A program made the translations under genes and the position numbers. Positions 26,928 to 57,137 of a stretch of DNA of 64,000 nucleotides are shown in pieces. Every line of letters begins with the position of its first letter. Position 1 is the first letter of the stretch. The notes beneath the pieces are model-generated. The model had not been told where the DNA came from, made no database searches, and was given only the letters and a program-made list of their open reading frames with translations. This DNA comes from Octopus sinensis (taxonomy: Eukaryota): NCBI RefSeq assembly GCF_006345805.1, contig NC_043006.1, forward strand, positions 54,126,001 to 54,190,000, given 5' to 3'.

Positions 26928-26958
<31 letters not shown>

Positions 26959-30920: not shown

Positions 30921-31239
30921 TTGGGACCTATATAAACACTTAATTCTTGGACACCTCTCAAAACCAAAACTGACACCAGTTAGTATCACTTTAATTACCA
31001 AATTCTCCTTAAATTCCACCCTACCATTTTAAATAGAGGACATATTAAATGATGTATTTCCTTGATACCCCTTAAAAGACAGAGTGGTCACAGCTGGAAT
31101 GCCATTGCTCATAAGTTTGCTCAAGTGGGGCTAACTAAGTGCTAAACAATGTTAACTAACATTATCATTAGCTTTTGATATAGATATTAATAATAATGAA
31201 CATCAATATCTTAGACACTTTGTATTTCTACTAAAAGGT

Positions 31240-31565
31240 AAAGATCCCCTTTGGTCAGGAATGACCATCAGATTGCACCTTGAAAATTCCCCTCTGAGGC
31301 ACATCTCAGCAAGGTTGTTTGTGGAAGACCAGCAGTCGCTGATGCATACCAGCCTCCCCTTTCCGCGTCACTGATGCTATCCAAGAGAAAGGCAAAGGCA
31401 AATACAGTTTGGCACCAGTGATGTTGTAACTCCTTTCTACACCTGAGTGGACTGGAGCAATGTGAAAATAAAGTGTCTTGCTCAAGAACACAACACACAG
31501 CCTGGTCCAGGAATCGTACTCACTACCTCATGATGGTGAGCCTGATACACGAACTACTGAACCAT
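31240..31565 (-). mobile_element. SINE family C, diverged
   Basis: Matches 25645-25946. Confidence 0.8.
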
Positions 31566-31693
31566 TTGGATTACCTAATTACTCTGTTTTAATAAAATTC
31601 TTAGAAACTATGTTCTTAATAAATACAATAATCTACATGCTGTCTGCATAGTCCATGATATCATTGTTATATAGTGTTACATGTTTGCATATA

Positions 31694-31870
31694 CAAAGGG
31701 GTGCTGCAAAGTTCCTGGTTTTAAGAGTACCACAAAAGGCCTGGTTGGAGGCCTAACCTTCCAAGTTCTTTTACAGGGCTTAGAAAAACTGAAGGACCGC
31801 TGCAATAAGAGTATGAATCTGAGAGGGGAATATGTTGAATAAAATCATAATTAACTGATCCTCTTTGTAT
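31694..31870 (+). mobile_element. Mariner-derived MITE (left TIR plus transposase C-terminal remnant)
   Basis: TA|CAAAGGGGTGCTGCAAAGTTCCTGG TIR and an LRGEYVE* remnant. The complementary TIR is seen in the 43790-44261 copy. Confidence 0.8.
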
Positions 31871-32439
31871 TTTCTTTTAGTACATCCTCATAGTTAGGAC
31901 TATTTAACGTGATTACAAGTTCAATTTAAGAGACAATTTTTATGGTGTGCCATTTGGACAACATTGATGAATCATGATAACCTGTTATAAAAAGATGTTT
32001 GAAGGTTTGAACTTAGTATTGTACACTTACATAGTTATTGTAAATACAGCACTAGACACTCATATTTCTTCTCATCGACATGCTGTGGCTAGACTGAGTT
32101 TTTTCTGTTATGTCAATTGTTGCCAATGCTAGGAAAAGCTTCTTTCAGTGGTTTTTTTATGTTTTTCCTCAGTCTAATTATTAATATATTTAACCTGTGT
32201 CAGTTTCTGTTTATCTAACCAACACTCTTATACAGGTACAAGACTAACTTTCCAGACACTGGTGATAATCCACACCAATTTACAAGCAGGGATCCTGTGG
32301 CTATCAGACAAGTTTCCTGGTACCTTGAACAGAATAGTACCTTGTATATTACATCATCATTGACATCATTGAATGTACCCTATACAGTATTAACTTGTAT
32401 CAATTATACTAATGTGCAGGTGCCTGTATATTATTTAAT

Positions 32440-32720
32440 TCATCATCATTTAACATCTGTTTTCCATGCTGGCATGAGTTGGATGGTTTGACGGGAGCTG
32501 GTAAGACCAAGTGCCACACTAGACTCTTGTCTGCTTTGGCATGGTTTCTGTGGCTGAATGTCCTTCCTAATGCTAACCACTTTACAGAGTGTACTGGGTG
32601 CTTTTTTTACACAGCACCATCACCGGTGCTTTTTACATGGAACCGACACCAATGTTTTTTATGTGACACCAACACTGGTGCTTTTTACATGGTACCAGCA
32701 CCAACAGGATCACCAAGTAA
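32440..32720 (-). mobile_element. RTE LINE 3' UTR fragment with (GAT)n tail
   Basis: catcatcatttaacatctgttttccatgctggcatg matches the 3' end of the RTE at 59210-60125. Confidence 0.8.
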
Positions 32721-32971
32721 AACTTGCAAGACAAAAACTCCTTCAGAATAATTATTTAAGTAAATTTAATATCTAATTTAGAGTGCATTGACCAAGGTGG
32801 CTATCTCTGGTTCAGAAAAATCTTTAATCTGTAAAGGCTTCAGAATCTTTGTTTCCCAAAAAATCAATGTTGTACCAGTATTCTATATTCTATGTCAGTT
32901 TCTAGTTGTTTAACCAACATTTCTTGATATTGTTATTGTATTAACTCTAAATGTTGCTTTTTCTATTGCAG

Positions 32972-33112
32972 GCATACAAAGGATTGGATATTATTACCAA
33001 CAAGGTCACAGCAGAGGAAAGAGCTGAATGTCCACATCATTTGTTGGACTTTGTCAGCCCTTTAAATTTTAAATATACCATAGCTGATTTCCAGTCGGCT
33101 TCTATACCTATT
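32972..33112 (+). CDS. TRIT1: tRNA dimethylallyltransferase, coding exon 2 (141 nt)
   Basis: Acceptor tttttctattgcag|. Translation AYKGLDIITNKVTAEERAECPHHLLDFVSPLNFKYTIADFQSASIPI continues the family motif (YxGLDIITNK...PHHL). Donor is |GTATCCTTT. Confidence 0.95.
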
Positions 33113-34875
33113 GTATCCTTTCAATTAAATATATCAACTATGACATATGTTACACAATCTTAAAGCTACTTTTATCCATTTCATATTAAATTAGTGTGGG
33201 GGATTTAAAATAATCCACAATTGCTGTCAGATCACAGTACGATATGCTTTCCTTAAAATCTAAAATTTTGTTTTCATTCACCTTGTTGCTTTTTCATTTA
33301 TTGGGCTGATCTATGACCCTTCCCCATTGTTTTTGGAGATATAGGATGTCTAGGGTACATTAGCCAATGTATCCTTGCTTTCCCAAGACTGTAGGGTTTG
33401 ATCTGTGTGCTATTTGGCTACTATTTCTAGCTGATCATATAGAAGCTCCCTTGTTTGATCAAGTCCAAGGACATTATTTGTGATATTGGACAGCATTATT
33501 TGTAGCCTTGCATAAAGATTTGTTACACGGATGCCATTACCAGTCAGTATGATTGCTCTGGAAAGGATTTTAAACACTGGGTCCACCTATTACCACATAC
33601 AAATGTGGTAATAGGTGTCTAATATGCTCATGCGTCTTTTATGCCATTGAATGCAGTAGTCTGTTGTGGATAACTTTCCTAGAAAAGCCTATTACCTATT
33701 TTCCACAGTTAGATGTAATAAACCTTTGTACAGTCGTTTTGGCCTAATGACTCCAACTCACAAATGTTATTATGTTAGAGGACTATGTACTGAATCCTAT
33801 AGGAAGAAACAATCTTATTACTTTAAAAGTCTCTTTGTCAGTCTCTTTGAGGACTTAAAGAAACCAATGCTGTTGTCAAGTGGTGGTGGGGACAAACACA
33901 AAGACACACATACACTTATATAATCTACCTTGCGGAGAGAGAGAGTTCTTATGTAGACACCTGTCAACATGCTAAGTATTCTAAACATCTGTATGTGATA
34001 GTAGATGGTTTCTTAGGTCCTAGGGTAAGAAATTAGGTCATTGCTTAGTCTTAGTTTCATGGACTTAAGTGAGTATCAAATAGATATCCTCCTAGGATAG
34101 GAACCATAACAGCATATTGCAATAAACATTTTCACACGGAATATGGTTGGTCTCGATTCTGTACTGAGGCTATGGAGAATTAAAGTGTTCTGATTAGAAT
34201 CATAACAAAATGCTATGTCCAATAAACAGGTAACCTAGTGCCTTATTCATTCAATTATCTTACCTCTAAATTAAGAATTAACTGTAGAATCTGGCAAATT
34301 CCCCTGTGCATCTCTATTATTTTGTGTTCAGAATAAACTTGGATCTTGGATGCCTGTCCAACCCATGTCAACATGGAAAAGCTGATGTACAATGATGATT
34401 GCGACCATCTTCCCCAGCAGCTAGAGAATCAACCCAGTTCTTTCTTGACCACATCTTTCTTAAGCAGTGTTCAAGTTTAACATTAACTACATTGATATTG
34501 ATCTTACTTGTCTAAGAAAGCTAACGAGACTAATTACAAAAATAAATATACTAATTCAGAGCTTTGAGGACACGTGCTCAATGTTCTACACAGTGGGACT
34601 GAACCTGCAACCATGTAACTGGGAAGCAAGCATCTTGCCACACAGCTGCACCTAGCATGGCATTGATTTCACTTGTCTAAGAAAGCTAACGAGACTAATT
34701 ACAAAAATAAATTTACTTATTCAGAGCTTTGAACCAAAATTTTAATTCAAAAAAAGTAGTGAGTAAGAATCTGTCTAGTTGTAACTTGTTGATAGTTTGA
34801 TCACAAATGCCAGACAAAACTAGTCAATTCAGAAATAGTTTGGAATTAATAGCTAGTTTGATTTAGCCTCTTTGT

Positions 34876-34945
34876 AGCTGATGAAATATTACAGAAGCTG
34901 ATGAAATATTACAGAAGCTGATGAAATATTTTAGGGGCTGATGAA
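34876..34945. repeat. 20-bp minisatellite (GCTGATGAAATATTACAGAA) x ~3.5
   Basis: Direct reading. Confidence 0.9.
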
Positions 34946-35244
34946 ATAAATACTACATAGTAAATATACTGTGAGAAATAATCAAAACTTGATTAGCTTG
35001 TTGACCAGTTTAAAAAAATTTCATATCGTTTTCACTTCATATATGCAAGTATGGCTCTATGGTTGGGAAACCTGCTTTCTCTTTATATAGTCTTCAGATC
35101 AGTTCAACTATGTAGAACTTTGGGCAAGTCCTAGGCTGCCCAAAGTCTTGCGAGTGAATCCTATTGAACAATCCAGTCCATGCCAGCAGGGAAAATTGAT
35201 TTTAAATTATGAAGATGTTGATGATGATGATGATGATGCCATGC

Positions 35245-35645
35245 TAGGTGCTGCTGTGTGGTAAGATGTTTGCTTCCAAGTTACATGGTTGCAGGTTCAG
35301 TCCCACTGTGTAGAACCTTGAGCAAGTTTCTTCTGTAGTATTGGGCCTACTAAAGCCTTGTGAGCTTATAAGTAAATTTGGTGGGTGGAAATTGAAAGAA
35401 GCCCATTGCGTGTATGTATGTGTGTGTGCACACATGCATGTCTGTGTTTGTTCCTCACCACTGCTTGACAACCGGTGTTGGTGTGTTTACATCCCTGTAA
35501 ATTAGTGGCCCAGCAAAAGAGATTGATAAAATAAGTACGAGGCTTAAAATTTAATAAGCTTCAGAGTCAATTTATTTGATTACAACTTCTTCAAGGTGGG
35601 GGTACCAGCATGGCTGCTGTCTAATGATTGAAACAAGTAAAAGAA
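35245..35645 (+). mobile_element. SINE family A, older diverged full-length copy
   Basis: Head, core and 3' half are all recognisable. Confidence 0.82.
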
Positions 35646-37881
35646 GAGACAAAATAATTTTCTGTACTGATCCACTGTTTTGCCGAATCTTTGATCAGGT
35701 ACTTAATTCTTCATACTTCAGTTTACCTACTCAGTAATTAGTTCTGGGAAACTTAAATTTAAGTTAATTAACCACTTACTCTTGGATGAATTTCTCTGCT
35801 ACTTAATGTTGCAATAGCTGGAATTATAAAGTTTTAAAAACATTTCACTTAGTTTTGTATTATTTTCTCATCTTTGTTTAGTTGAGCATATAATGGTCTC
35901 TGCTTCTAAGAAATTGTTTGACTCCTACTCTGACCAACATTCCCTCTCATAGTCATGTATTTAGACTTAGTGTACTAACCAAGTTTTTTTTTCTTGGTCT
36001 CATAACTGCATCCTTTAGACTTCCCCCTCTCCAGTTTTCTGGGTTTTTTTTCACTCTACCCACACTTCACTTCATTCCCTTTACCTGTCCACCCAGCCAT
36101 CCTAGATTTTATGACCCCTTCTATTTTGTTTCTCTATCCACCTTTTTGTACCTTAAGTATTATGCCCTGATACTTTATTTCCACCATCCTTTCTCCCTTT
36201 CCTGCTGGGGTGCCCATGTATCACATCTACATCAAGATATCTGCTTCTGTCCCTCTATCATGCTTTATCCCTTCAACACCTGGAAACAATGCCATTTCCT
36301 CAGTACTACATCCCCATTCTGTGAAGGGGTTTTGTAAGTTATTTGGTATCCTCACTAGTGTTGGTGCTATAAAATAAGCAGCCAGTACATTTTGTAAAGT
36401 GGTTGGCATTAGAAAGGGCACTCAGCATAGACCCTACCATTGGAACTTGGCACATTCTTTGGCTTGTTGGCTCTTGTTGAACTGTCCAGCCCATGCCAGT
36501 ATGGAAGATGGACATTAAATGATGATGATATTCAGTTGTCATCATCATCATCATCATTTGTATATCTATTCTTTCCTCCCATGTTTGTAAGGATTAGATG
36601 AGTCACACTATATCATGTTTTTTCCCCTCTTTTTTTGCCATATAGATTAAGAGGAAAACTGCTAGACCTTGTGTTTTGGCAAGTATTTTTATAGCTGGAT
36701 GTCCTATCACCAATCATTTTACAGCATAGATTGGAGTGACTTTATTATTCTACTGGCACTGAGAGTCTGTGGCAAGACTAAAGAGTCTCTTCTGCCTCAT
36801 GCAAGGTTTTATCTATATATATAAAACAGAGTTTGTGTGTGGTACATATGTTCCTTATGAATTCAAAAACTGAATTGCCAATTTTGACAATATGAGGTAT
36901 CAAAAGATTCAGTAATCTTTCAGCTATCAAATGAAGTATGTTTTCTGCACAACAGCTCTTTTTTACTACAAAAAATAAGCATGAAAACAAGGTTGGGTTG
37001 CACAATTTTGAGGTCATTCTTGGGCAATATTTGGGTTTGCTTCTAATGTTTTTCATGTCAAAAAATGCAGCAATGTACAAGGAATGTTACGAGTGTATTA
37101 GTGATGCACAAAATCCTATTTGTCAATGGAAAATGACCAAAAAACATGCTTTTTTTGGAACAATTATTGGCATGTTTTCTGTCAGTAATGGCCTTTGTAC
37201 CACATCTAAACTGCTAATGCGAACATCTCCAGTATTCCATAATCAAACAATGTCTTTGAAGTATTGTGATACCATTTCTTTGCACAAAGCCCCATTTTTC
37301 AATGGAAAATTGACTAATGAACTGTATCTGACATAATTGTGATTGCTTCTGGCATTACTATCGCAAACAATTTGTCAATGTAGATTTTCTTGGTAGCAAA
37401 CGACTCGGGTTTAAATTCAATAAAATTACCTCAAGAATTAAGCACAGTAAGATCCTATATTCGTTTAAGAGCGGTAAAGATGTGAAACAGTGACTGAAAC
37501 CTTTCAAGCTTTTTGCCTTTAACACTTTTCTTTTTATTCAAACCAATTTATGCAAAGTTGCTTATCGTTATTAATATATATTCATGCCTATTATTCATTC
37601 CATAAGCTCCAAAGTTTGTTAGGATTTTGCTACAATCTCTCTATTCTTCATAGTGGTTGAGCATGTACTATAACATGAGTGGTGCAATGGAAAACAAATG
37701 TTTGTCCTGATAACCTCAGTGAAGACAAGAACAACGCGTATCTATGTGAGGACAAAGTAAGGTCACATACGCATATGAGTCCACCCACAGTGCGTGTCCC
37801 TTCATTGGTCGGGATGCAATGCTGGAGTGCATTGTGTGTGGTGTGTACTTTCCGCTTGGACTAAAATTTGAGTGTGTGTGT

Positions 37882-38180
37882 GGAGGTGCAATGGCCCAAT
37901 GGTTAGGGCAGCGGACTCACAGTCGGAGGATCGCGGTTTCGATTCCCAGACCGGGCATTGTGTGTGTTTATTGAGCAAAAACACCTAAAACTCCATGAGG
38001 CTCCAGCAGGGGGTGGTGACAACTCATGTTGTACTATTTCGCCCAACTTTCTCTCACTCTTTCTTCCTGTTTCTTGAGTAATGCTGTGATGGACTGCCGT
38101 CCTGTCCAGCTGGGGGGAACACATATGCCACAGAAACCGGGCCCATGAGCCTGGCTAAGCTTGAAAATGGTGCATAAATA
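37882..38180 (+). mobile_element. SINE sharing head and body with family D but with a different 3' tail
   Basis: The first ~190 bp match 5571 onward. The tail gccacagaaaccgggcccatgagcctggct...ataaataaa is unrelated to the 5571 tail. Confidence 0.82.
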
Positions 38181-38188
38181 AATATATA

Positions 38189-38227
<39 letters not shown>

Positions 38228-38524
38228 CAATGTGGCTGTAGGTCACAACACCTGGGCAACGCTAGGGTGCATTGCTAGTATAGAGTTATTGCTTACTTTG
38301 ACATATTGTACTTGCTTCAGCTTACTGAGTACACATCTCTCTCATGAAGTTAAAGCAGAATCCGTTTTATATATATTAATTTCAAAATTTGGTACAAGGC
38401 CAGCAATTTCAGGGGAAGGGGTTAAATTGGTTGCATTGACCCCAGTACTCAACGGGTATTTATTTTATCAACTCTCAAGGACCTTATGGCTGAGAGAGAG
38501 TGGGGTTTGCTTCTAATGTTTGGG

Positions 38525-38673
38525 TTTACTTTACAATCAAGTAAGGATCAACTGGTGTAGTACTGTTTGGGGCCATCCATACATACAGGCATGTCCTTTA
38601 TGGACATGTCTGTATGTATGGATGGCCCCAAACAGTACTACACCAGTTGATCCTTACTTGATTGTAAAGTAAA
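38525..38673. repeat. Near-perfect palindrome, 72-bp arms, 5-nt loop
   Basis: 38525-38596 pairs with 38602-38673; the single difference is a G-U-compatible pair. Confidence 0.97.
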
Positions 38674-41299
38674 GCCAAAGTGAAGATTTTTTTATAACAT
38701 ACTCATGTTTGGTAGAGTAAGTTTGTTTGGAATTTTTTGCAGTGCACTGGTTTGGAATTTTAATTCATAAGTGCTGATATTGTTTACTGCCAAATTATCA
38801 CTGTAGAATATGTTTACTACTGGATATTATTAGAACTTCAATTATGGTTATATTTCTTTGAATTACATTTCTACGAGAATTACTTTTATCTGTTTGGAAA
38901 CTATAAATTATCAACAATTGTATTGTTTTTTTTTAGTATAATGCTATCAATTGGACAAACAGAAACTGTAAAGAGATTGAGATAGAGATCAAATTTGGTA
39001 TTGATAATTATGTATTTCAACCCCTAGTGCTGGTGCCTTGTAAAGTGCACTCAGTACTCCCTTTAAAGCAGGAAGGGCATCCAGCCATAGAAACTAAACC
39101 AAAACAGACTTTGGAGTTTGGCACAGTCATCTGGCTTGCCAACAGTTCTCAGACCTTCCAATCCATGCCAGCATAGAAAACGGATGTTAAATGATGATGG
39201 TGATGACTAAAATTTTAAAAAAATATTTGCTTGAACCCAATTAGAGCATTATATCATGACATTTTAAGTGTTAAAGGCAACACTGGATTAAAAAGAAAGA
39301 AAATAATGGTGTGGTGGGTGGAAAGAATATATACATATTAAGATGGAGTGTTGGGATAGGAAAATGTAACCAAGTCTCTTTGAAATTACAATTAACTAAA
39401 TAGTGTAAGTTTTAATATTTAGGATAAAATATCAGTGTAGCTTCTCTGTTGAACTTCCTTTTAGTCATAAATACTTTCATTCTAATAGCCTCTTTTCTCA
39501 AACTGCTGATCTCCAAAACATCTTGTTTTCCTTCGCTCTATGATATTCAGTCTTTTAAGCTTTCTGTTGAATTTGTAGGCTCCTTCTTTTCCTTCTTTAT
39601 AGTCTTTTATACTATAATGGCTCCGACACTTGTTTGGAACAGAATCTAGTAAAAAAAAATCCCAGTTTAGAATTGTCATAAGTTGTGACTAAAAGGTTTA
39701 GCATCAGAAAGAGCATCTGATTGTAAATTGCTGCCTCAGAAAGAGGCTCTGTGATGAGTATGGTTATATAGGATATAGTGCACTGCAAAACATCCCATGG
39801 TACTCCTTGCTAGAACTTGAGATTTGTGAACCGAACCGAAGTTGATTTACAATGGTCCGGTGCCTGATGTTTCTTGTTTCTGAAAGTGATTGATTGAAAG
39901 GAGAGATGGAAATGAATGTAGAAGGATATAGAGGAAGACTAAAAGACCTGGTTCAAGGTGATGGAAGAGGAAAATAAGGGCAAAGGGAGATGTAGAAGAC
40001 AGGACAAAATATAGAAGACTGTCATGGGGCCCTTCAAGAATAACTCTTGTTTTAGCCGGGGGAAGAATTGGCCTTAAAATGCTTATTGTTAATGTTTTCG
40101 AAAATATAAATCTGATTTCCATGTTGGAACGAGATTCTTGTGAATAAGAAGAAGAAGCAGTAATGATTTCTAACATAAGCACAAAAGCACATGTTTGTGG
40201 AAAAGAACAAGGGACTATATTAGTTTTGGTGCTGCGTTGGTCTTTCATTTTATTGGACCCAGTAGTAGAAAAGACAAACTCAACTTAGGAACTATTTGAA
40301 CTCAGAATGTAAAGTGGTAAAACTTACTGTAAAGTAATTTTGTTAGTTGCTTTACTGATTTTTGGATATGACTTGAAACTGTATTTGGTGGTGAGGCTTG
40401 AATTTGAGAGTTCAGGAGCTTGGGGGAATATGGAATTACCCCCTTATTCACCACTACTTCCAGGTTTGCTCTGACCTGGTGTTACAGTACCTGTTAAGAG
40501 CCCCAGTTATGTGTCAATATCAGATGGTGCTGTGGTTAAAGCATACTGGAATGGAGGGGGGCTGGCCTCTGCACATGTCATACAGGACTACCAGTTTGTG
40601 AACATACCCTGATGTCATGTGACCCAGTCCCCTTGTCTTAGGGTTAAATAGTCCTTGTACCTCAAGGGTAAACTTGAGAGTGCAAGAAATTAGTAGGGTA
40701 AACTTTAGGAAACCAATGCTGTATTCTTCCTAACAAAAATCATAATGCTTTAGACTTTACATAATATACACAACATATAGGATGTTGGACAGGAAGGTAT
40801 GGAGGTCCATGGTTGTTGATGTCTGTCAGTGTGTCATGTAACAAGAGGGAATAAGATGCAGACAAACTTGTATTAATATTTTCTTAGAGTTGTCCATCTT
40901 TACGTTCTGAGTTCAAATTTTGCTGATGTCACCTTTGCCGTTCATCCTTTCGGGTTGATAATACAAGTACCAGTTGAACACTGGGGTCAATATAATCAAC
41001 ATATTCCCTCCCCCAAAACTGCTGGCCTTGTGCCAAAATTTCAAATCAATGCTTTCTAAGTGTTCCATTACTCTTGATCAAGTTCATACTGATTAAATTT
41101 GTAGTTGTGCTGGTAGTAATCCTTCTTTACTATTACTGCTCCCTACTTACTAAGTTAACACCGTAGTAATATGTTAATGACGATGAAATTACAAATGCAG
41201 CAGTTAGCATATTCACAAATTGATTTGTCAGTTGTCTTGCATCCACTCATCAGTTGAAAATGTATTCAAGCTTGTTATTTTTCATCACCATTGTTTTAA

Positions 41300-41521
41300 C
41301 CCTTAAGCATTTAAACCAGCAAATATCTGGCCAAAATATTCTATCCATTTTATGTTCAAACTGGTCAGATCTGGTCTCTCACACTTACCCTACATTGTCA
41401 TTCTAAAGAGTTAACTGTTGCCTCATCAAAATCTCAAAGCTACGAGATGATGCATGATTAATGCAAAACAATGTGAGTCAATAAGCATTACATTTGAAAG
41501 AATAAGTTGAATGCTAAAGGG
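41300..41521. mobile_element. piggyBac-type MITE (TTAA TSD)
   Basis: TTAA|CCCTTAAGCATT...AATGCTAAAGGG|TTAA. Related copies at 46431-46649 and ~62365-62500. Confidence 0.9.
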
Positions 41522-41729
41522 TTAATGAAGGATGTGTATCACTGCTGTTATACCCAGATTTCAACTGCTGCCCTTACCTGGAAATAGTACCAGTTTACAA
41601 TCTTACCCTTATTTAGAAGTGCAGTAGACTATCAAGGGTCAACTGTTGCTCTTATTTAGAGGGTTAGTGACTGTATTTAACTAGGGAACAGTACACTGGA
41701 TCTACCAATATTTTTACCCTTGCCCTTAA

Positions 41730-41951
41730 CCCTTTTAATACCAACTCGGCTGAAACCGGCTCTCGCTCTGTAGTACAAATGTCTTCTTTTCATAAGTTTT
41801 GAATTAAAATCTTCCACCAAACCTTAGTCACAGTTTATGTTCTCAACACCAGCTAAATGATAACTAATTTATTTTACTAAATTCTTTATTATATCTAAAA
41901 TTAATTGAAAGAAACACAGAACATCTCAAAATATATGTGGTAACAAAAGGG
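41730..41951. mobile_element. Second piggyBac-type MITE family (TTAA TSD)
   Basis: TTAA|CCCTTTT...AAAAGGG|TTAA. A partial inverted relative lies at ~51110-51245. Confidence 0.88.
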
Positions 41952-42892
41952 TTAATATCAGTAGTCTGACATCATACCCTGCAGTTATCATGTCTCTTCA
42001 CTATTCACTAGACATGACAACAGAATCTCGAACATTAAGGACATTTATTACAAATGAAAATTTTACAATCAATATGCAGAAAATTTTTACTTATTTTGTC
42101 TTATCATCTTTATTGTTTGATCTTTCATTCAGATATTCTTCAGTTTCAATTTCTCTGGGACACTTTCATTAACTTTAAAAGATTCCCATAGAAATATCTA
42201 TATCTCTCATCACTGGACTCACCCATTCCTTCTCTGTACTTTGTTCTCTTTCTCTCTCTCTCAGCACACTGTATGTAGTTATCTGAATTATTCTCAGTCA
42301 TTTATTGATGTGCCATGCTCAGGTGCCACTCCTATTTCAGCTGATACATCACACTGTGTCTGGGTGCTACTGTCTCCCCTTTTGACATTTGAATGGGTGG
42401 GGCATCCAACTATTTAAATTTGTTTTATATATCTTTTATCTCCACCTCCTTGAACCTTTCCCTGCCTCTTATCCAACCACTTCTGTATTAATCATATCAA
42501 TATTTAATTTCTACTTAATCTTGGGAGAGATAGAGAGAGGGTGTGAGAAAGTGAGGTCAGATCCATATAGATCTGAAACTCCTGCTTACAATTGAGGGAA
42601 AACATTTGTCCTCAGACAATCCTGTTCTATCAGAGATATTTTTTTTCCAAGAGATTTCACTTGCTTTCCTCTTTTTCATATTTGGTGAAGGTTTTCACTT
42701 AGCTGTCCTTCACACAAGCTGTAGCCACTTGAAATGCCTGACAGCTTTTAATGATGTTTGCTTGGTTAGTTGGAAGCTGTTTCTTCAACTTCTAGGAGAA
42801 AGTCTCAAGATTTTTGTAATTCTTAGCACACTTTGGCAAAATTCTTATCTGAAGATACCCCCTTCCCGTCTTTATCTTTCTGTCTCACTCAC

Positions 42893-42951
<59 letters not shown>

Positions 42952-43735
42952 AAAACACAAATGGAGAAGATATTGGACAACTAGTTTGTGAGCCAGGAGT
43001 TCCAATCTACCCAAATACCTTACTACTGTCTCTGGGCTTAGCACTTTAATTCTATGCCATAATTTATTTAGCTATTAGCATTAGGTAACTGCTAACCTAT
43101 GAACAGAATAGGGTTGGATTCTTTCAAGAGAAAGTTTCAGGTTGTCACAAGTAGTAGTAGTAGTAGTAGTAGTAGTGGTTGTAGTGGTGTTAGTACTACT
43201 TTAGTGCAAAGTGCTGATTTCATGATAGTTTGTTTACATGTGAAAACATTATTATTATTATTATTTTGATGTACAGGCTTTATGACACCACTTATTTAAT
43301 TCTATTGGGATTTGAGGTCTGTAACACACTATTGTGTCGCAAAATGAAATTGAACAAGGTGGTAGGAAATATAAATAGTATGGCTGAAAAATAACTTGAT
43401 CTATTTAGAAATGTGTGACAACTTAGAGAAATTGTATACAGCAACTTGTTTCACAGGAACATTTCCCTACAGACTTTCGGACAATTTTCTGTTGTTATAA
43501 CATCCAAACTTAATAAAATTTCTGATGCAACAAGCTTTTCTTCAATAACGCCCTTTGACATATATATATGTGCAACTATAAATCCAGACATATTTTTTTC
43601 TCTCTCTGTCTATTTTCTGTCCTCATTTCATTCTGCAGAAGAGCATAGACTCAAAATGTCAAAGACTCAAACTAATACTCCTTGTTTGTTGTTCCTTTAC
43701 CTGTCTCTCTCTCTTGGTTTTTGTACGATTTTGAA

Positions 43736-43782
<47 letters not shown>

Positions 43783-43789
43783 TATATGG

Positions 43790-44261
43790 TTTTAAGGGTA
43801 TCATGGAAGGCCTGGTTGGAGGCCCAACCTTCCAAGTTCTTTTACAGAAAAACTGAAGGACTGCTGCAATAAGTGTGAATCTGAGAGGGGAATATCATCA
43901 TCATCATCATTTTACGTCTGTTGTCCATGCTGGCATGGGTCAGACAGTTTGACTGGGCTGGCATGCTGGAAGGCTGTGCCAGACTCCAGTCTGATTTGGC
44001 ATGGTTTTCTGCACCTGGATGCCCTTCCTAACACCAACCACTCTGAAAGTGTAATGGGTGCTTTTATGTGCCACCAGCATAGGTGCCATTTGTGTGACAC
44101 TGGGGTGTGTTTATGTGCCAATATGTGTGATGCCAGTATTTGCAACAACTGTGATTTTGCTTGGCTTGATGAATCTTCTTCTCAGGATAAAATCATAATT
44201 AACTGATCCTCCTTCTGTATTTTCTTTTACCCAAAGCCAGGAACTTTTCAGCACCCCTTTG
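43790..44261 (+). mobile_element. Mariner-derived MITE with nested RTE 3' UTR fragment (~43895-44185)
   Basis: Matches 31694-31870 on both sides of the insert. Right TIR ...cagcacccctttg|TA. Confidence 0.82.
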
Positions 44262-46430
44262 TATATATAATTTCTACTATAGCACAAGGCCTGGAATTGT
44301 GGAGGAAGAAGTTAGTCAATTATATTGACCCCAGTGCTCAACTGGACTTATTTTATTGATGCTAAAATGATGAAAAATAAAGTCAAGCTCTATCAGATGT
44401 CCCAAGTCTGCTAAATTGCTACATTACACACACACACACACACACACACAATTACTTCCAACATCATCAATGTAGACATCAAAATAGTTATCATTACCAC
44501 TATAATTACTACTTTCACCAATACCACAATGATTGCCATCATCATCATCATCATCATAAGATTTAGATCTTATTTTTCCAAGTGATTAAGGTTAAAATTT
44601 TAGGGGTATTTTTCATTGGGGTTTTGGATTTTGGGCCAGTGCTTAAGAACATTGGTAGTCTTTAGTTAAAAAACAATGTTGTAAATTCAGGCTATTCTAA
44701 AGAATGTGCATTTTGCATGTGTTTTCCCATGTTAGCATGGGTTAGATGCATAGATATGATTGAGGCATTGTTCTACAGCTAGATGCCTTTCCTGTCACTA
44801 ACCTTTTACCTTTTTTTTTAATTAAGGGATTTCTTATTCCTCATTTTTGAAAGTGCAAGAGGATTTGTTGGGAGGTAAATGACTAAATTTCATTTCTTGT
44901 AGCTTATGCTTTTTCATGTGGCAGATGCACACACAAATACATGCACATGTGTCAGCAACCCACCACATACACATGGTGAGCTTTGTGCACTGTCCATCAA
45001 CCAAATTCACTGACAAGTTATTAACCAAGCTGGGGCTTGCGACTGAACCCCAAACCATGTGGTTGACTAAAAATACTGAATACTAAGCTCAACAAAGAAA
45101 TTTTCTCGTGTAGGAACACCACTCTAGTTTCAAGATGGCACCCAAAAGTAAATAAATAAATGAATAAATAATAGTGGATTGTTTGAATTAGTACTGGAAA
45201 TCACAGGAATTGATATGATTAGTAGTTGTGATGGTTGTTTGTCCCTTTATTATTGTAATAAGGGCACAATTGAAGCTCCAGATAGTCATGTGGGGATTCA
45301 CTGAAATGGCACCTCGTTCTTTTTTCTGGGACTAAATTTGAACATATCAACAGAACTTAATGAACAGAAAATCTCTAGATGGTTTCTTGGCCAGCTAGAA
45401 ACAGCAGCTGAATCTCTCTCAAATCATGACCTATTAATTTAAATAATAGCTTGTACACTTTAAGAACACAATGCCACTGAACCTATTATTAGAAATAACA
45501 GTCAAATATCAGATCACGTTCTACAAGAATGAAGGACACATTGGATAATGTGGTCCTTGATACAATCTGCCTGGGAAAAGTAAAGAAATGATGCAATGAT
45601 CCTAGTTTAAATGCCTTTGACCAATAAGTTTGTTTGGCCATTTCTAACCCTAGGCTAAACCACAATAACTTGTTCTTGTATACTACAGATACTGATTTTT
45701 ATGTTTTTCCATGTGTAGGTTTTGTCTTTTATGTCCTTAGTTGGAATTCTCTATAATGCAATTAATTCAGGAATGTAAATCCTTGAAAAGCTTCCACCAG
45801 TCATAGTAAAGTAAGTAGACATAGAATGGTAGATGTGGTTTATCTTAATATAGTGGAATATTTATTGATTTTCAGATCATAGATCCATATCTTTATTTCA
45901 GTATGTTGCTCTTAGTGTATTAATTAGTCTGGTTGAAAATAGAGTTATTCTTGTTACCGTTGTTGTCTTCCACTACCACCACCACCACAACCGTATGTCT
46001 ATAGAGAAACTTTTGAGTGACAGCCATAAAAACACTAAATGACAACTTGTATACAGATATTCAAATTTGCTTAAACTATTCTACCTATGCTGTCATCATT
46101 ATTGTCGTCATCCTCATCATCCATCAGTTTATTTTATCATCTAATGTTTAATACTGTGAAAGAGTTTCACAGGTCTGCATTACAACACATTGTTACTCTT
46201 ATTCCTTTGTCATATCATCTGTAAGGTCCTTGATTCCTGTGAGTTCATGTTAGCACTTTTTCCCACTTCTTCCTATGATGGAAGTCCTTTTTACTGTCGA
46301 TAAATATGAATCAGCAAAAAAGGACTCCCTGTGCTTGCTGGAACTGCTTGAAATAAGAGCCAAACTGTCTTCAAACTAAACCCTAGAATTTTGAAAAGAA
46401 CATATTGAATAACGTAGAGCAAGGTTCTAA

Positions 46431-46649
46431 CCCTTTAGCATTTAAACTGTCCATATCTAGCCCAAATATTTTACTTGTTTTCTGTTAAAACTGACCAGAT
46501 CCAACCTCTCACACCTACTGACAATGTCATTTAAAAAATATACAGATACACCATTGAAATCTCCAAGCTACAAGATAATGCGTGATTAATTCAAAACAAT
46601 GTGAATAAATAAGCAATACATTTGACAAAGAAATCTGAAAGCTAAATGG
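46431..46649. mobile_element. piggyBac-type MITE, diverged copy of 41300-41521
   Basis: ctaa|ccctttagcatt...gctaaatgg|ttaa, with internal similarity to the 41300 copy. Confidence 0.8.
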
Positions 46650-48599
46650 TTAAAGAACAAAAATCATGAATTAGTCTCATAGTTGGAAGGTCTTTGACCA
46701 TAGATCTACACAATTTAGGTTGCCAGGGTGTGTGTGTTTGTGTGGCTAAAGAACAACGACCAGCATCAGTAAAGACATTTATTGACTTTGAGCTGCTTAT
46801 CCATTTATGTAACATGCCTAGTTCAGTGGAGTTGGAGTTGTCTTTCTCACATACTCTTCTGTTATTTTAAAAAATAGTTCTGTAAAGTATTTTCACTATC
46901 ATGCTCTGTTGAACTTGTACCCAGCACTGTCTGTAAGTTCCCGAACTGTCTATAATTTATTCTCTTTCTTGTCTGTTAACTTCCATTATAATACTAAAGC
47001 TAAGCATCAGACTTTAACAGTTCCTTGTTCCCACTAGAAATTATTTACATGACATTTTCCCTATCATCACAAATACACAATTTGAACTGAACATTAGTCA
47101 TACAAGTTTCTTGCTGTTATTCTTAGCATCCACTCAAATCTTAGTAAGACTATGGACCGTTGTTTTCTTATTATTAGACTAAGGAATAATTTCAAAAGAG
47201 AAAAGGCAAGGTGGGGGCAGTTCTAAGAGAAAGAAAATCTTTCCTCATCATCAAAGGTAATTGCTTCCTAAAACATCAACCAACTATTTTGAACTCTAGG
47301 CACCATGCTCTACTGATCTCTTACCCTCTATACTAATGAGGTCACCTTATCTATTTACTTCCGGTAGACAAGCAACAGTAGTCTATGTAATTCTTTCTCT
47401 GTGGGAAGTTCATTCTTGTCAGTCACACTAGTTAGTGCATTTGGTAATATTGATAAGGTTGAAGAGATTTGAACATAGTGGTGTTGTCATCATCCACATC
47501 GTTATTACTGTTGCTGTCATTCTTGTTGCAGGCTCATGTAATCACTTTTCCATGCCAGTACATATGATAAAAATGGGTGGTGCCTCTACTAATCTACAAA
47601 GTGGATATTATAGTGATGGTAATGGTGATGATGATGTTCAGTATCAGTTGTTTTTTGTTTTTTTCACAAGTCAACATGGGTTGTATAGTTCTGCAAATAT
47701 TCTGTGTGATTAGTTTTTAATTTTCCATGTGGGGTCGGTTATGGACAGGATTGGTAGTGGATTAAATGTCTTGTAGTATTTAGTTGCATCCCTTCACATT
47801 CTAAGTTCAAATCCTGCTGAGATCAATGGACTTCATTTTTCATCTTTCCAGGGTTTTCAGATTTGTACCAGTCATGTATGGGTAAGTGGGGGGGGGTCGA
47901 TTTAATCAATTAAACACTTTCTATGACCTTATGTCTGTGTTAGAAATTGCTATTTTACTGGGAGGTGAGCATCAGACAGGCTAACAACACATGAGATGAA
48001 ATGCCTTGAAGTATTTAGATATTGAGGGCAGTTTCAGTGACTATATCCTTAAAATTTGTGGTCTTGTGGTATGGTTCTGTGTGGTTAAGAAGTTTATTTG
48101 ACAAACATGTGGTTAACAGTTTGACAGTATTGCAAAGTTTTAGACAAATTGAATTTCAATTCAATCCAAAATTTCTGAATGGATTTGCATAGGGAGAAAA
48201 TTGAAGAAGCCAGTCAGCTTCTTTAATACCACCACTTAACCTTTATTTTTTTTTAGCAGCTTATGTTTTGTAATCATTCAGAGATCTGTTCCATCCTGCC
48301 ACGAACCAAAACTTGTGATTCTTGCTACTTTATCTTTGTTACTCATAGAATACCTCTATAAGTTTCTGGTACTGCCCTTCCTCCTCTCGCTAAGCCATAA
48401 ATCAAATTTTAGAATCAATTATTACTCAGAAGTCATTTTTATTGTGTGCTTCCACTGCATTATTGAAATCAACTGTGATATGGTGTTTTGTTTTGGTTTA
48501 ATATTTTTTACTGTATTGGTATGTTATACATATTTATATACATCATATGACTATACCAGCATAGTCTTCTCTCTTGCTCACTATATCTGATGCCTCTTA

Positions 48600-49290
48600 T
48601 GCTTAATTTTCCTCTTAAATCATTTACTCTCTTTTGTACATGCACACTGATGTAACCCAGCTAGCATTTCTTTCAAGCCTTTGCATGTCCCCTGTAGTCA
48701 GCCCGTATTTCATACACAGGCATCATACAATCTGCCTTTCACTCTGAGGGAGAGGCTCTTTGTGCCCAACAAAGGTAGTAGCTCTCTGAACTTTGCCCAG
48801 CTCATTCTAACAACTAAGTTTTCAGAACTTCCTCCTCCTCTGCTATCTTGATCATCGAGGTAACAGAAGCTATCTGCTATTTCTAAGTGCCCTCCCCCAC
48901 CTCAGAATATTTGAGGAAGTCTTTTTTTCTCTGCATTCTTAGTGTTTATTGTATCTGCACATCTGCCACATGCCAAAGTTACTTTCTGTTAATCTTCCTG
49001 TGATACTGCTGCACCTCTTTCTTATATGTTCATAGCTTGCACTGGGTACATCGTATGGAATTTCTACCTATCAAGCAGGGCCATCTGCCTGAAGAGATTA
49101 GTAATTTGTCTTGTTTTCCTACTGACTAGGACTTTGGTTGCAACTAAATTTACTTACAGGATTTTTGATTCCAGACCTTGCTTCCATACCTGAAATTTCT
49201 TCTAGTTCTTGTAGCGATTCAGCTATAAGACCAATGAAAACTGAACTGATGTCTATGTAGAAGTTTTTCTTACTTTTCCTTCATATAGTC
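48600..49290 (-). mobile_element. Decayed RTE LINE RT/C-terminal fragment
   Basis: Reverse-complement similarity to ~29760-30420 (agagcctctccctcagagtgaaaggcagattgtatgatgcctgtg). Confidence 0.75.
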
Positions 49291-49324
49291 TACTAGTTCA
49301 CTGATCTCATTTTAATAATAATAA

Positions 49325-49735
49325 TAATCCTTTCCACTATAGGCACAAAGCCTGAAATTTTGTGGGAGGGCGATAGTCGATTACATTGACCCCCAGTGTC
49401 CAGCTGGTACTTATTTTATTGACCCTGAAAGGATGAAAGGCAAAAATCGACCTCAGTGGATTTTGAACTCAGAATGTAAAGTTGGACAAAATGCCACTAA
49501 GCATTTTGCCCGGTGTACTAATGATTCTGCCAGCTTGCCTTCTCCTTTCGGTTATAGACACAAGGCCTGAAATTTTAGGGGATGGTGACACTTGATTATA
49601 TTGACCCCAGTGTTCAACTGATACTTTTTCGTTATCCCCCCCCCCCCACCTCATCCCTCACAAAAGGATGAACGGCAAAGTCGACCTTGGCAGATTTTGA
49701 GCTCAATACGTAGTGACAGGCAAAATACCCCTAAG
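49325..49735 (-). mobile_element. Cluster of older SINE family B copies
   Basis: Two family bodies (gaaaggatgaaaggc.../cgaccttggcagatttga). Confidence 0.8.
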
Positions 49736-50169
49736 CATTTTGTTCAGCATGTTGATTCTGCGAGCTCAACAACTTTCTTGATAATAATAGTAATTTCTAT
49801 GAGGAACCACTGCCCATCCTATGAAGTTTCCTGTCTTATCCTATCCTGTTTCAACCCTTGCAAGAATGAAAAGCCAATTTGGGATTCCAAATCAGGACAT
49901 AAAAGAGATGTAGCTAAAAGCAAATTTTCAATGCTCATCTGATTCAGATAATCCATGGTTTCAATTTCCTATTACTACTACTAATACTACTAGTAATACC
50001 AATACTATTACTAATAATGAAACTAATTCTACTAATAATAATTATCATGGTGCGCCCATGTCCATTTATTAAATTTCATGTCTCTCTAATATCAACAGAA
50101 TCTTATTTTTATGATGATGGGAATACTGATGAAAATGATGATGTGTATGTTCCTTGACTGAGCTTTCAG

Positions 50170-50268
50170 ATTGAAAATTTGTTATCCAATCAAAAGCTTC
50201 CAGTAATCGTTGGTGGAACAAATTACTATATTGAATCTCTTCTCTGGAAGTTTCTAATTGAAAAAGAG
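50170..50268 (+). CDS. TRIT1: tRNA dimethylallyltransferase, coding exon 3 (99 nt)
   Basis: [33 protein letters not shown] contains the family motif PIxVGGTxYY. Acceptor ttccttgactgagctttcag|, donor GAG|GTAGGT. Phase 0 matches exon 2. Confidence 0.95.
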
Positions 50269-50280
50269 GTAGGTGTGATA

Positions 50281-50344
<64 letters not shown>

Positions 50345-51326
50345 ATATATATACTGAGTTATGATAAATACTAACATTAAACTGAAGGACTGACTACTCA
50401 ATACTATTTTGGGAGTGCATATTTATACATTTACAAGATTAGTTGTGATAGTGACTTTGAAGTATCCAAAGATGGCTAGCAGGCCAAAAGTTCAAAGTCA
50501 CTATCACCACCATTCTTATAAATGTACATGAATGTATGTGTATGTATACATACACACACACACATTCATTTTTTTTTTCTAGTTTCAGCTAGTGCTCTGT
50601 GTGAATATGTGTTCTGTTGTGTGTGTATGATTAAATGTGTTTGTATATAATGTTTACATGTATGTAATATACCTGTGTATGTCTGTTTCTCTGTTGCGAA
50701 GCCTTTCTTATGCTCAAATACACATACCGATGTGTGAAATAAAAACATTAAGTGATGCTTGAGTTTATTGTGTGTATACTGTGGATATATCCTTACAGTT
50801 AAATGTGGTGAGAACCAATATTAGCTACATGATAGGATATCAAAAACATAACAGAATAGCATGACAGACAATATGTCTCTGTTGCTAGCTTAAGTTTAAC
50901 TGTCTTGACAGATGGGTAGGCAAAGATAGGTAGACATTTAGTCAAATAGATAGAGAGATAGAAAGATAAACCTAGCCAGCAACAAAACTCATATTGTATC
51001 TTATAACTACCCTGATATTTTTTTGTTGACATCTTGTCATTTTGTTAATTTTTGTTTTCTCACATTGCTTTAATGTAGATTTAACTGCAAAGACAAGCAT
51101 ATCCCAAATTTACCCCTTTTGTTACCATATTTCTATTGAAATATATTGCTTTTGTTTCAATAAATTTTGAAAATAGTGAAGAATTTAGTAAAATATCTTT
51201 GTCATTATTAAGGTGGTGTTTAGAAAATAAACTAACACAAAGTTTTGATGGAGGTTTTAGCGTGTGTCATTGACCCAGGGGCAGTCTCATGTAAATTGGT
51301 ATCAAAAACGCTAATCATGTTGTTTT

Positions 51327-51396
<70 letters not shown>

Positions 51397-51404
51397 ATAT
51401 ATAT

Positions 51405-51680
51405 ATAAACGGCAGTGCATCAGCATGGCCACAGCTCTGAGCGGAAATTACAGAAAAGAGAATATATATATTACGGAGATGTACTTGCATAGCAAGTAAC
51501 TTGATCTGAGATCGTGTGCTGAAACGAAAACAATTGCAGCGTGGAAGGTGTTTATAAGCCATTTAAGAAACACACAAAAGCCGTTCGATTCACTTCAACA
51601 TTTAAGTTTAATTTGTCAAAATATTTTCGCGCTAAAATCCGCGACCTGTTCACTGACAAAAATCCGTGCTGCATCTCATA
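51405..51680 (-). mobile_element. (TA)n-embedded repeat carrying a hammerhead-like fold (probable Penelope-type terminal repeat)
   Basis: Flanked by (TA)n on both sides. Contains the hammerhead-like motif at 51612-51660. Confidence 0.45.
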
Positions 51681-51754
51681 TATATATATATATGAATGAT
51701 CATCAGGAAGGCCGTTATTTAATATATTTAAAAATGTAGCTTATCTCTCTCTAT

Positions 51755-52200
51755 CATCATCATCATCGTTTAATGTTCGCTTTCCATGCTGGCATGGGTT
51801 GGATGGTTTGACTGAGGACTGGTGAGCCAGTGGCTGCACCAGGCTCAATCTGATCTAGCAAAGTTTCTACAGCTGGATGCCTTTCCTAACGCCAACCACT
51901 CTAAGAGTGTAGTGGGTGCTTTTATGTCCCACCCACATGAGGGCCAGTCATGCTGAAAAGGTGTTTTTATGTGCTACTTGCATGGGAGCCAGTCCGGCGG
52001 CACTGGCATCAACCATGCTTAAATGTTGTTTTTCACGTAAGGCGACGCTGGCAACGATCACGCTTGAATGGTGCTTTTCATGTGTCACCGGCACAGGAGC
52101 CAATCTGTGGCCCTGGCACCAATCGCACTCGGATGTGCTTTTAATGTTCCACTGGCACGAATGCCAATCAGGCAGTACTGTCATCGGTTATGTCGGCAAT
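51755..52200 (-). mobile_element. RTE LINE 3' UTR fragment
   Basis: catcatcatcgtttaatgttcgctttccatgctggcatggg, followed by the ggtgctttt repeat units. Confidence 0.85.
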
Positions 52201-52211
52201 TTTAATTTTGA

Positions 52212-52270
<59 letters not shown>

Positions 52271-52275
<5 letters not shown>

Positions 52276-53572
52276 GGGGCAGAGAGGACAGACATTCACA
52301 AAATCATTAATTTGAGCTGCAAACAAATTTTGACATTAATGTGTTCATATTGAATTAGCATTTGTCAGAATTAAGTGTGGAAAGCAATGTCCATCATGTG
52401 GTGTCTGTTTTCATTGATGCATTTCTGAAGGTGTTCTTGGAAATTGACCTCCACTCTCTCCAGAATTGCTCTGTTGATTTGGGTGACTTCCATGTAAATA
52501 GTTTCCTTCAAATCATCCAATGTATGGGGCTTCTGCACATACACATGTGCCTTGTCGTTTCCCCACAAGAAATAATCACACATGGACAAATCAGGGACCA
52601 AAGGGGCTGAGGAATGTCAGCACACCAAGAAATGAGGCAGTCACCAAGGAGAGGGTGAAGAACATCCATTGATGCTCTGGCTGTGCGGACCATCGCCCCA
52701 TCCTACTGAAACTACATGCATCAAATAGGCATATGTTTTTGTTATAATTCAGGTACAAAGAAGTTGGTTATCACCTTGATGTAACGCTCGGAGTTCACAG
52801 TAACAGCATTTTCATTATTATCTTCAAAAAAGTAAGGATCAATGATGGCACCTTTTCCAACAGCACACCAGACTGTCAATTTTGGGCTGTGCAGTTCTCT
52901 TGGATTTTCAAGAGCCCAACAATGTTCTGTTGATTCACCATGCCATTGAGGTGAAAATGAGCTTCACTACTCATTAACAGAATGTTGTCATTTGCCTCAG
53001 AAATTGCTTCCATCTGACATGCAAAGTTAAGCTGCTGTACATAGTCCCATTGGTTTCAAATGTTGCCCAATGACTAATTTTTATGGGTAGAAATGCAGGT
53101 TTTCATGCAAAATATACCTTATCGTTCAATTACTGATGCCAAGTTCAGTGGAATACCTCTGAGCATAGTGATTCAGATTCCATATCAAAGCTTGTCTGAT
53201 GCGTTCAACATTTTCTGGGGTTTGTACCATTTGTGGCACCCCCACCAGTCTTCTATTCATTAGTGTACCTCGTGTATGAAGTGCATTCACCCAATGTAAG
53301 ATTGTGTTATGGGTGGGAGCAGCCTGATTTTGGTGAATGTTGAAGTGGCACCAAAACTCATGCTGAACTGCTGTGCCAGACTCATTATACTTCACGTAAC
53401 TGTTGTAGGCAAACATGATGCTCTATCATCCACAGCACCATGACTTCACCTGAAAAGGAAAAAAAAATGCTAAGACCCCACAGACTGATTGATACCTGTC
53501 AGACATATATCTCACCCCTTCGGGCTGAGTAATAGCCATTTCAAAAACATCTGTCCTTTCTGCCCCACCTTG
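52271..53572 (-). mobile_element. Near full-length decayed Tc1/mariner of rosa/DD41D-like type
   Basis: TIRs agggtggggcagagaggacaga and tctgtcctttctgccccaccttg|TA. N-terminal HTH (53126-53416) and C-terminal PDLSMCDYFLWG...QKCINEN. The DD41D assignment rests on motif resemblance; I did not count the spacing. Confidence 0.85.
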
Positions 53573-53813
53573 TATATATTTATTGCATGTTTATATGCAA
53601 ACATCTGAGTGCATATAAGGGAAAAAAGAGTTCTCAATATCAAATTTTAGAGCATCATATTACAGTTCCTGAAGCTGATATTTCATATTCTTTAATTTAA
53701 AGTTTCACATCTCCAATCTGGCAGTTGTCCTTGGACATTTGTCTTCCAGCCAATCACACAGCCTTGTTAGTGACTTTGGTGGGTAGATACTGAAAAAAAG
53801 CCTGTTTTGTGTA

Positions 53814-53848
<35 letters not shown>

Positions 53849-54427
53849 ACACAGCTCCTTAAAACAACTTGTGTGAATTATAAGAAAACTTCTCTGAAAT
53901 GTATAGTAACGTTTGCAGTTGTCCATGAAAATCTTGTCTGGATTAAGGGGAAACTATTATCTTGCTAAGAAACAAGTGAGGGTTGAAGGCTGGAAGAGCA
54001 TCCAGTCATGGAAATTCTGCTTCATTATCTCAGAAGTGTGTCCTTAAGATGGCAGGACATGTTTTGAGGATATTTTTCTGTGCCACGTAAAAAGCTCTTA
54101 TACTGGTGTAGCACAAAGAGTACCTGAGCTGGCACTTGTGTTGGTGCCAAACAAAAAGCTCCTGTGCTGGTGTGGCACAAAAAGTACTTTGTGTTGGTTT
54201 CAAGTAAAAGGTATCCCATACTCTGTAAAGCAGTTGGTATTAGGAAGTGCATCCAGCTGTAGAAATCCTGTCAAAACAGACAAATGAATCCTGGTGTAGC
54301 TCTCTTGCATGCCAGCTCCTGTTGAGCCATCCAACTCATGCCAGCATGGAAAACGAACATCTGTAGCAGATGAAACGACCTTACTGGGGCGCCTTCAGCA
54401 GCTGGTGTTGGTTGCATTAATTTATAC

Positions 54428-54700
54428 CAGTGTTTCCCAAAGTGGGCACTATTAACCCCCCTGGGGACAGTGGAAAGTTCCAAGGGGGTGTTGAAGAAGA
54501 GTGGGGCAATAATGGGGTAGCAATTCATGTAAAAACAAAATAATGGGTTCATTAGGTTAAGTTTTATTTGTGAAATACAGTTGCTTTGAATTTGCTTCAG
54601 AAAGAGGTCTATGTTTGTGATGGTTAGTTGGGGTGGGGGTGCTAGGAATGTGGCCTGGGTGTCAAGGGGGCAGTAGGCCCAAAATGTTTGGGAACCACTG
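54428..54700. mobile_element. hAT (Charlie-like) MITE with 8-bp TSD
   Basis: TIRs CAGTGTTTCCCAAA and TTTGGGAACCACTG. ATTTATAC (54420-54427) versus ATTTACAC (54701-54708). Confidence 0.9.
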
Positions 54701-57134: not shown

Positions 57135-57137
57135 TGT

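Follow-up and report, generated by a model that had tools for sequence, protein, structure and literature searches.

What kind of intron separates the second and third coding exons of the octopus gene for the tRNA-modifying enzyme TRIT1 (tRNA dimethylallyltransferase), and does its length of 17 kb set it apart from the introns around it? The question is raised by a 64,000-nt stretch of Octopus sinensis DNA (NCBI RefSeq assembly GCF_006345805.1, contig NC_043006.1, positions 54,126,001 to 54,190,000 of the forward strand), which we call the window and number from its first letter. Our analysis indicates that positions 33113-50169 are very probably intron 2 of Octopus TRIT1, a GT-AG intron of the minor (U12) class that was inherited from the bilaterian ancestor, is orthologous to the minor intron of vertebrate TRIT1 and has a length that we take to be neutral.

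Coding exons 1-3 of TRIT1, a member of the IPPT family, lie on the plus strand of the window. Exon 1 (26472-26600, plus strand; 43 codons) was placed by a tblastn match together with reading of the sequence, contains the start codon ATG, encodes the P-loop GATGTGKS and is 98% identical to O. bimaculoides at the nucleotide level. It is followed by a U2-type intron 1 of 6,371 nt (26601-32971, plus strand; cag/GTAAGT ... ttgctttttctattgCAG, the slash marking an exon boundary) and by exon 2 (32972-33112, plus strand), whose 47 codons read AYKGLDIITNKV...FQSASIPI. Intron 2 (33113-50169, plus strand; U12-type GT-AG, 17,057 nt, phase 0) leads to exon 3 (50170-50268, plus strand; 33 codons). Joined, exons 2 and 3 encode YKGLDIITNKVTAEERAECPHHLLDFVSPLNFKYTIADFQSASIPI and then the exon 3 peptide, in frame and without a gap (...FQSASIPI/IENL...). 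This joined peptide matched the Pfam family IPPT (PF01715) with E=4e-24, and its best named relatives were the tRNA dimethylallyltransferases of Aplysia californica and Octopus bimaculoides. The IPPT domain, the N-terminal P-loop and a conserved 13-residue motif are all found in the gene. Intron 3 begins at 50269 with a U2-type donor (gag/GTAGGT) and runs to the end of the window at 64000 (plus strand). Just past the exon 3 donor, an (AT)35 microsatellite (50284-50353) begins 15 nt inside this intron. Exon 4 was sought in 50269-64000 by tblastn with a human query, which serves as a lead only, and by tblastx with the Aplysia, carp, dragonfly and L005 loci; neither gave a match. Intron 3 is therefore longer than 13.7 kb, and the gene is read here for exons 1-3, with exon 4 onward (the remaining IPPT exons and the C-terminal zinc finger) lying beyond the window.

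The ends of intron 2 bear the signals of the minor class. Directly after the exon 2 codons ...CCT ATT stands the 5' splice site GTATCCTTT (33113-33121, plus strand), which agrees with the U12 consensus RTATCCTTT at 9/9 positions. As a U2 donor the same site is poor: att/GTATCC matches MAG/GTRAGT at 3/9 positions, and the donors of introns 1 and 3 score 9/9 and 8/9, respectively. At the other end, the branch-point sequence TTCCTTGAC (50150-50158, plus strand) agrees with TTCCTTRAC at 9/9 positions, and its branch A (50157) stands 12 nt before the final base of the intron (50169). This distance falls within the range of U12 introns (about 8-21 nt, optimum about 10-15), and in the orthologous introns it is 8-11 nt. 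The 3' splice site AG occupies 50168-50169 (plus strand), and the protein alignment crosses the junction free of gaps. An extended polypyrimidine tract is absent. The branch site is separated from the AG by just 9 nt (TGAGCTTTC), pyrimidine runs elsewhere than in the branch site reach at most 5 nt, and the upstream sequence is purine-rich. The 40 nt preceding the branch site are rich in GAT and GAA. Further upstream, a CTAATA-like hexamer repeat (49969-50040) precedes the U12 branch site by 110-180 nt.

Neither 9-mer is rare when taken alone; it is their placement that is improbable. With both strands of the window counted, dinucleotide-preserving shuffles predict 0.73 copies of the donor 9-mer and 1.27 of the branch-site 9-mer. 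TTCCTTRAC nevertheless occurs a single time in 128 kb (both strands of the window), at the acceptor. Because the donor stands at the homology-defined end of exon 2 and the sole TTCCTTRAC stands just before homology resumes, we estimate the joint chance at ~1e-9, from a donor probability of about 6e-6 per position and a probability of about 1.4e-4 that a branch site falls within a 14-nt interval. The sole other exact copy of GTATCCTTT in the window is at 8500-8508, upstream of TRIT1 and near an opposite-strand transposase relic. The remaining GTATCCTT or ATATCCTT sites (8500, 33369, 62694 and others) were considered as donors and rejected, as they fit the chance expectation and lie away from coding boundaries.

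The original prediction, made from the letters of this DNA, had assigned the gene to TRIT1 and the intron to the minor class. It had described a U12 donor at 33113, a branch A placed 12 nt before the 3' end of the intron, a missing polypyrimidine tract and in-frame joining of SIPI/IENL. All of these points were confirmed: the donor, the branch site at 50150-50158, the 9-nt spacer and the gap-free junction are as described; the Pfam match, the exon 1 P-loop and the named tRNA dimethylallyltransferase relatives identify the gene; and the intron shows the full set of sequence hallmarks of the U12 GT-AG type.

Could the major (U2) spliceosome nevertheless remove this intron, the U12-like motifs being leftovers or coincidence? 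Its termini are GT-AG, the TTGAC within the branch site is compatible with the loosely defined U2 branch consensus yUnAy as well, and an insect provides an example of just such a change. In the dragonfly Ladona fulva (locus L004, about 5139-7746) the intron at the same position reads AAG/GTTAGC ... TTGCAG/GTG and is U2-type, which points to conversion from minor to major class. Converted introns, however, lose the U12 motifs, as Ladona did (GTTAGC...TTGCAG), whereas both octopus 9-mers are perfect. The octopus donor, moreover, has none of the U2 positions -1 G, +4 A, +5 G and +6 T, the pyrimidine tract is missing, and the U12 motifs are kept in O. bimaculoides (donor), in Aplysia and in the loci L007-L009. 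We regard U2 removal as very unlikely.

The minor class of this intron is shared widely. In Aplysia californica (L002, 14898-15300) the orthologous intron is a U12 GT-AG intron of 403 nt, ...CCTATC/GTATCCTTTT ... TGTCCTTAATGGAGTTCAG/ATAGAG, with the donor GTATCCTTT, the branch site TCCTTAAT and a branch A 10 nt from the end. The O. bimaculoides locus (L001) was read at the donor, the acceptor lying beyond its 10-kb flank; the donor 9-mer is intact there though nearby bases differ. A Logan contig (L009), likewise read at the donor, gives CCTATT/GTATCCTTTC with the donor GTATCCTTT. Two further loci of GT-AG type, both from one genome (L007/L008), carry TTCCTTGAC, the same G variant as in octopus, 11 nt before CAG/ATTGAT. 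The carp intron (L003, 3178-6107) is a U12 AT-AC intron of 2,930 nt, ...TCTCTC/ATATCCTTTC ... TTCCTTAATTTCATAC/ATCGAG, with the donor ATATCCTTT, the branch site TTCCTTAAT and a terminal AC; its AT-AC ends point to the minor spliceosome. Elsewhere in the carp locus, none of the U12-like sites coincides with the end of an exon. A fish-like contig (L010, position 4266; donor read) has ATATCCTTT too and is of AT-AC type. In L005/L006 (GCA_013332595.1; L005 2521-2760) exons 2 and 3 are fused while the intron between exons 1 and 2 is still present, which indicates intron loss. In several database open reading frames (ORFs) that cross the end of exon 2, the donor appears in translation as ...VSF or ...ISF, which is what GTATCCTT and ATATCCTT encode.

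Since the same position is U12-type in Aplysia, L007/L008, L009, carp and L010, the minor intron appears ancestral. The comparison of TRIT1 intron position and class across molluscs and vertebrates finds the same codon position, with U12 introns in Aplysia and carp. The simplest reading of these loci would be an ancestral bilaterian U12 intron whose subtype split between molluscs and fish, and which underwent U2 conversion in at least one insect and loss in at least one lineage. Subtype switch, U2-type conversion and loss are all described fates of minor introns (PMC10639083). Human TRIT1 is among the listed minor-intron genes (PMC7507305), and the U12 intron of mouse Trit1 has been assayed after SMN depletion (PMC4601534). 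Octopus sinensis itself was part of a pan-eukaryotic intronIC survey, in which molluscs were relatively enriched in minor introns (PMC10639083).

A different exon-intron structure was also weighed, in which either GTATCCTTG at 33369 serves as the donor or an unrecognised exon lies within the 17 kb. The former is a second donor-like site (33369-33377, plus strand), with GTATCCTT 256 nt downstream of the first, inside intron 2, and it is conserved in O. bimaculoides. Its use, however, would keep sequence with an in-frame stop at 33161-33163, and conservation near 33369 is that of its flanks. As these flanks are equally conserved, constraint on the site cannot be inferred from its presence in both species; it could be a cryptic or decoy donor. 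Stop-to-stop frames of at least 50 aa in the six frames of intron 2, with some low-complexity frames excluded, matched no Pfam family, and hence the intron yielded neither a nested gene nor an intact transposon protein. The protein also runs across IPI/IENLL gap-free against Aplysia, carp, dragonfly and the intron-less L005 protein. An alternative structure therefore seems hardly credible on these grounds.

Several points weigh against the assignment of 33113-50169 to an ancestral minor intron. Phase 0 is the minority phase among minor introns, at about 22% (PMC10639083). The U12 class was assigned by consensus matching. That the human minor intron occupies this exact position is something we infer from the carp and fish-like loci. 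Finally, a spliced Octopus TRIT1 was sought in a protein database search, which returned a read-through model only. This model, P0009 of O. bimaculoides ('tRNA dimethylallyltransferase-like', 105 aa), continues past the U12 donor into intron sequence (…SIPIVSFYLNISTMTYIIQS) and is truncated at the first in-frame stop there, L001 10001-16392 corresponding to window 26472-33163. Such read-through at the donor suggests that gene predictors mishandle the long minor intron.

The remaining part of the question is the length. The original prediction had presented an intron packed with transposons and hairpins, grown to 17 kb by insertion of short and long interspersed nuclear elements (SINEs and LINEs) and miniature inverted-repeat transposable elements (MITEs) with its signals preserved. 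The last point held: donor and branch site are perfect here, at 17 kb, as against 403 nt in Aplysia and 2,930 nt in carp. The description of the content was overstated. In a BLAST comparison of the window with itself, 24.5% of intron 2 (22% with low complexity masked) has another copy in the window, vs 37% (31% masked) for the whole window and 38-41% for intron 1. These shares are lower bounds, because the comparison was made within the window. The idea of an exceptionally transposon-rich intron was accordingly dropped, intron 2 being less repeat-dense than its neighbours. Nor is 17 kb special to the minor intron, with intron 1 at 6.4 kb and intron 3 above 13.7 kb. Of the elements named as insertions, SINEs (as copies) and a LINE (as a relic) do occur in intron 2, and that part stands; no MITEs were found there, and that part falls.

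The SINE copies belong to two putatively tRNA-derived families whose dispersed copies are 70-82% identical and whose consensus sequences show A- and B-box-like motifs by eye (e.g. GGTTCAGTCCC, GAGTTCAAATTCC), without tRNA calls by ARAGORN or Rfam. Family A, about 400 nt long with a tRNA-like head and about 10 copies in the window, is represented at 35245-35657 (plus strand). Family B, with at least 15 copies in the window and a head that resembles a tRNA if taken in the family's own orientation, is represented at 40880-41050 (plus strand) and also at 38373-38481, 44271-44390 and 49313-49792, the last being two adjacent copies. Family C, a further interspersed repeat of which the window holds about 10 copies, occurs at 43892-44118 (plus strand) and, in the opposite orientation, at 39027-39206; a family D pair lies at 41293-41529 and 46424-46657. 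The LINE relic is a degenerate non-LTR (non-long terminal repeat) 3' end at 48536-49234 (minus strand), with 70% DNA identity to a reverse transcriptase-bearing copy in intron 1 and a 63-aa frame 67% identical to the intron 1 ORF at 30138-30530. That intron 1 copy (29682-30533, plus strand) has two ORFs: the first matches RVT_1 (E=1e-6, just below the gathering score) and, weakly, a PHD-like finger, and the second corresponds to the conserved region downstream of the reverse transcriptase. Microsatellites are present in intron 2 as well. Rfam at gathering thresholds and ARAGORN gave no match in the whole window, so that no small nucleolar RNA, small nuclear RNA or tRNA was detectable in the introns.

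Two long hairpins among the inverted repeats of intron 2 are real, and the remainder are (AT)n microsatellites. The first, at 38519-38679, is a near-perfect palindrome that arose by head-to-head copying of a 78-nt arm; the two arms enclose a 5-nt loop, and as RNA the whole folds at -147 kcal/mol (z = -25). It has no second copy in the window, and O. bimaculoides has the flank and then one arm only. The second is a 98-nt inverted repeat of 92% identity. Its left arm is an inverted copy of a SINE head (34566-34663, minus strand) and its right arm, 570 nt downstream, is the head of the family A SINE at 35236-35333 (z = -19 in an 800-nt fold). The inverted copy is bordered by a 71-nt direct duplication (34497-34567 = 34662-34732), and the arrangement over 34497-34732 is suggestive of a template-switching-like event. 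At this site O. bimaculoides has the SINE alone, without the inverted copy. The absence of both hairpins from O. bimaculoides indicates recent local inverted duplications in the present lineage. A MITE origin was rejected, since each hairpin is single-copy and O. bimaculoides lacks it.

The window is colinear with O. bimaculoides chromosome CM046609.1, with an identity of 88-95% in BLAST blocks; exons are 97-98% identical and the alignable intron about 95% (gaps ignored). Over the first 7 kb of intron 2, O. bimaculoides is about 2.5 kb longer and includes an extra family A SINE and a LINE piece, which shows that transposon insertion does alter the length of this intron. We read the 17 kb as neutral because all three introns are large, because old repeats and recent duplications are both present, and because the two Octopus species differ by kilobases. 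The length and transposon load of intron 2 are, as judged from these comparisons, those expected from the Octopus genomic background, and its splice signals alone show evident constraint. Across species, median minor and major intron lengths correlate with rho = 0.90 (PMC10639083; Larue & Roy 2023).

How such an intron would be recognised follows from established knowledge of the minor spliceosome. The U11/U12 di-snRNP (a pair of small nuclear ribonucleoproteins) would cooperatively bind the donor GTATCCTTT, through U11 and later U6atac, and the branch site TTCCTTGAC, through U12. The G of TTCCTTGAC would be tolerated as a G-U wobble, with A50157 bulged as the branch nucleophile, and the AG 12 nt downstream would be selected by distance in the absence of a polypyrimidine tract. 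Exon-definition contacts with the strong U2-type sites flanking exons 2 and 3 probably aid recognition across 17 kb.

Does the intron also act as a control point? The junction could be correct and yet form a regulated bottleneck, at which slow or conditional minor splicing limits TRIT1 mRNA and hence the i6A37 modification of tRNA, as the original prediction had entertained. Lower splicing efficiency and stress-related retention are established for some U12 introns, and this pre-mRNA contains two very stable hairpins. The mouse Trit1 transcript was marginally down after prolonged SMN depletion (PMC4601534). Yet the sequence shows nothing that sets the intron apart from one that is simply a neutral legacy. 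Both hairpins arose recently and are missing in O. bimaculoides, the length of intron 2 tracks that of neighbouring introns, and U2 conversion or loss has occurred in other animals without obvious consequence. Neutral processes have also been argued to explain most features of minor introns (PMC10639083). A bottleneck thus seems improbable. More doubtful still is a cephalopod-specific regulatory node, in which slow U12 splicing together with the hairpins, as potential ADAR or small-RNA substrates, would tune TRIT1 and i6A37 by tissue or state. A special regulatory role finds no specific support in the sequence, and a neutral, ancestral minor intron remains the reading that we prefer.

Repeats and transposon relics also occur elsewhere in the window. 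The 3' part of SINE family B is tandemly amplified at 16612-17196 (period 184-217 nt, about 3 units, 90% identity), and more dispersed copies of the family lie at 19864-20026 and 21036-21388. Relics of transposon proteins at 7824-8333, 10463-10948 and 55944-56354 (all minus strand) are, respectively, fragments of a DDE_1 (pogo/Tigger-like) transposase, of a zf-RVT and, in intron 3, of a DDE_3 (Tc1/mariner-like) transposase.

The practical value of these results lies in annotation, as the octopus TRIT1 model (O. bimaculoides P0009) needs repair. TRIT1 is already catalogued as a minor-intron gene in human and mouse, and the octopus intron, being orthologous to the vertebrate one, is a correct but ordinary member of the class; long minor introns are expected where the introns of a genome are long, and no new question is opened. 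A single site nevertheless displays the known fates of minor introns, being GT-AG in molluscs, AT-AC in fish, U2-type in a dragonfly and lost elsewhere, and it spans a roughly 40-fold range of length with unchanged signals.

Compared with known systems, the octopus intron shares with the vertebrate TRIT1 minor intron the gene, position and phase (carp ...ALSL/IEDM... vs octopus ...SIPI/IENL...), the U12 donor core TATCCTTT and a branch site (TTCCTTAAT or TTCCTTGAC) near the 3' end. It differs in its termini and length, carp and L010 being AT-AC (carp 2,930 nt) and octopus GT-AG (17,057 nt). Intron 2 of Aplysia TRIT1 is closer, with the same donor GTATCCTTT, GT-AG ends, phase 0 and codon position and with TCCTTAAT 10 nt from the AG; its branch site, however, has A-A-T where octopus has G-A-C, and it is 403 nt long rather than 17,057 nt. 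Ladona fulva and L005/L006 have the gene and the codon position in common with octopus, but the intron is U2-type in the former and missing in the latter. With U12 GT-AG introns in general (Larue & Roy 2023), the octopus intron shares all sequence criteria and the scaling of length with major introns, and it differs in phase 0 only.

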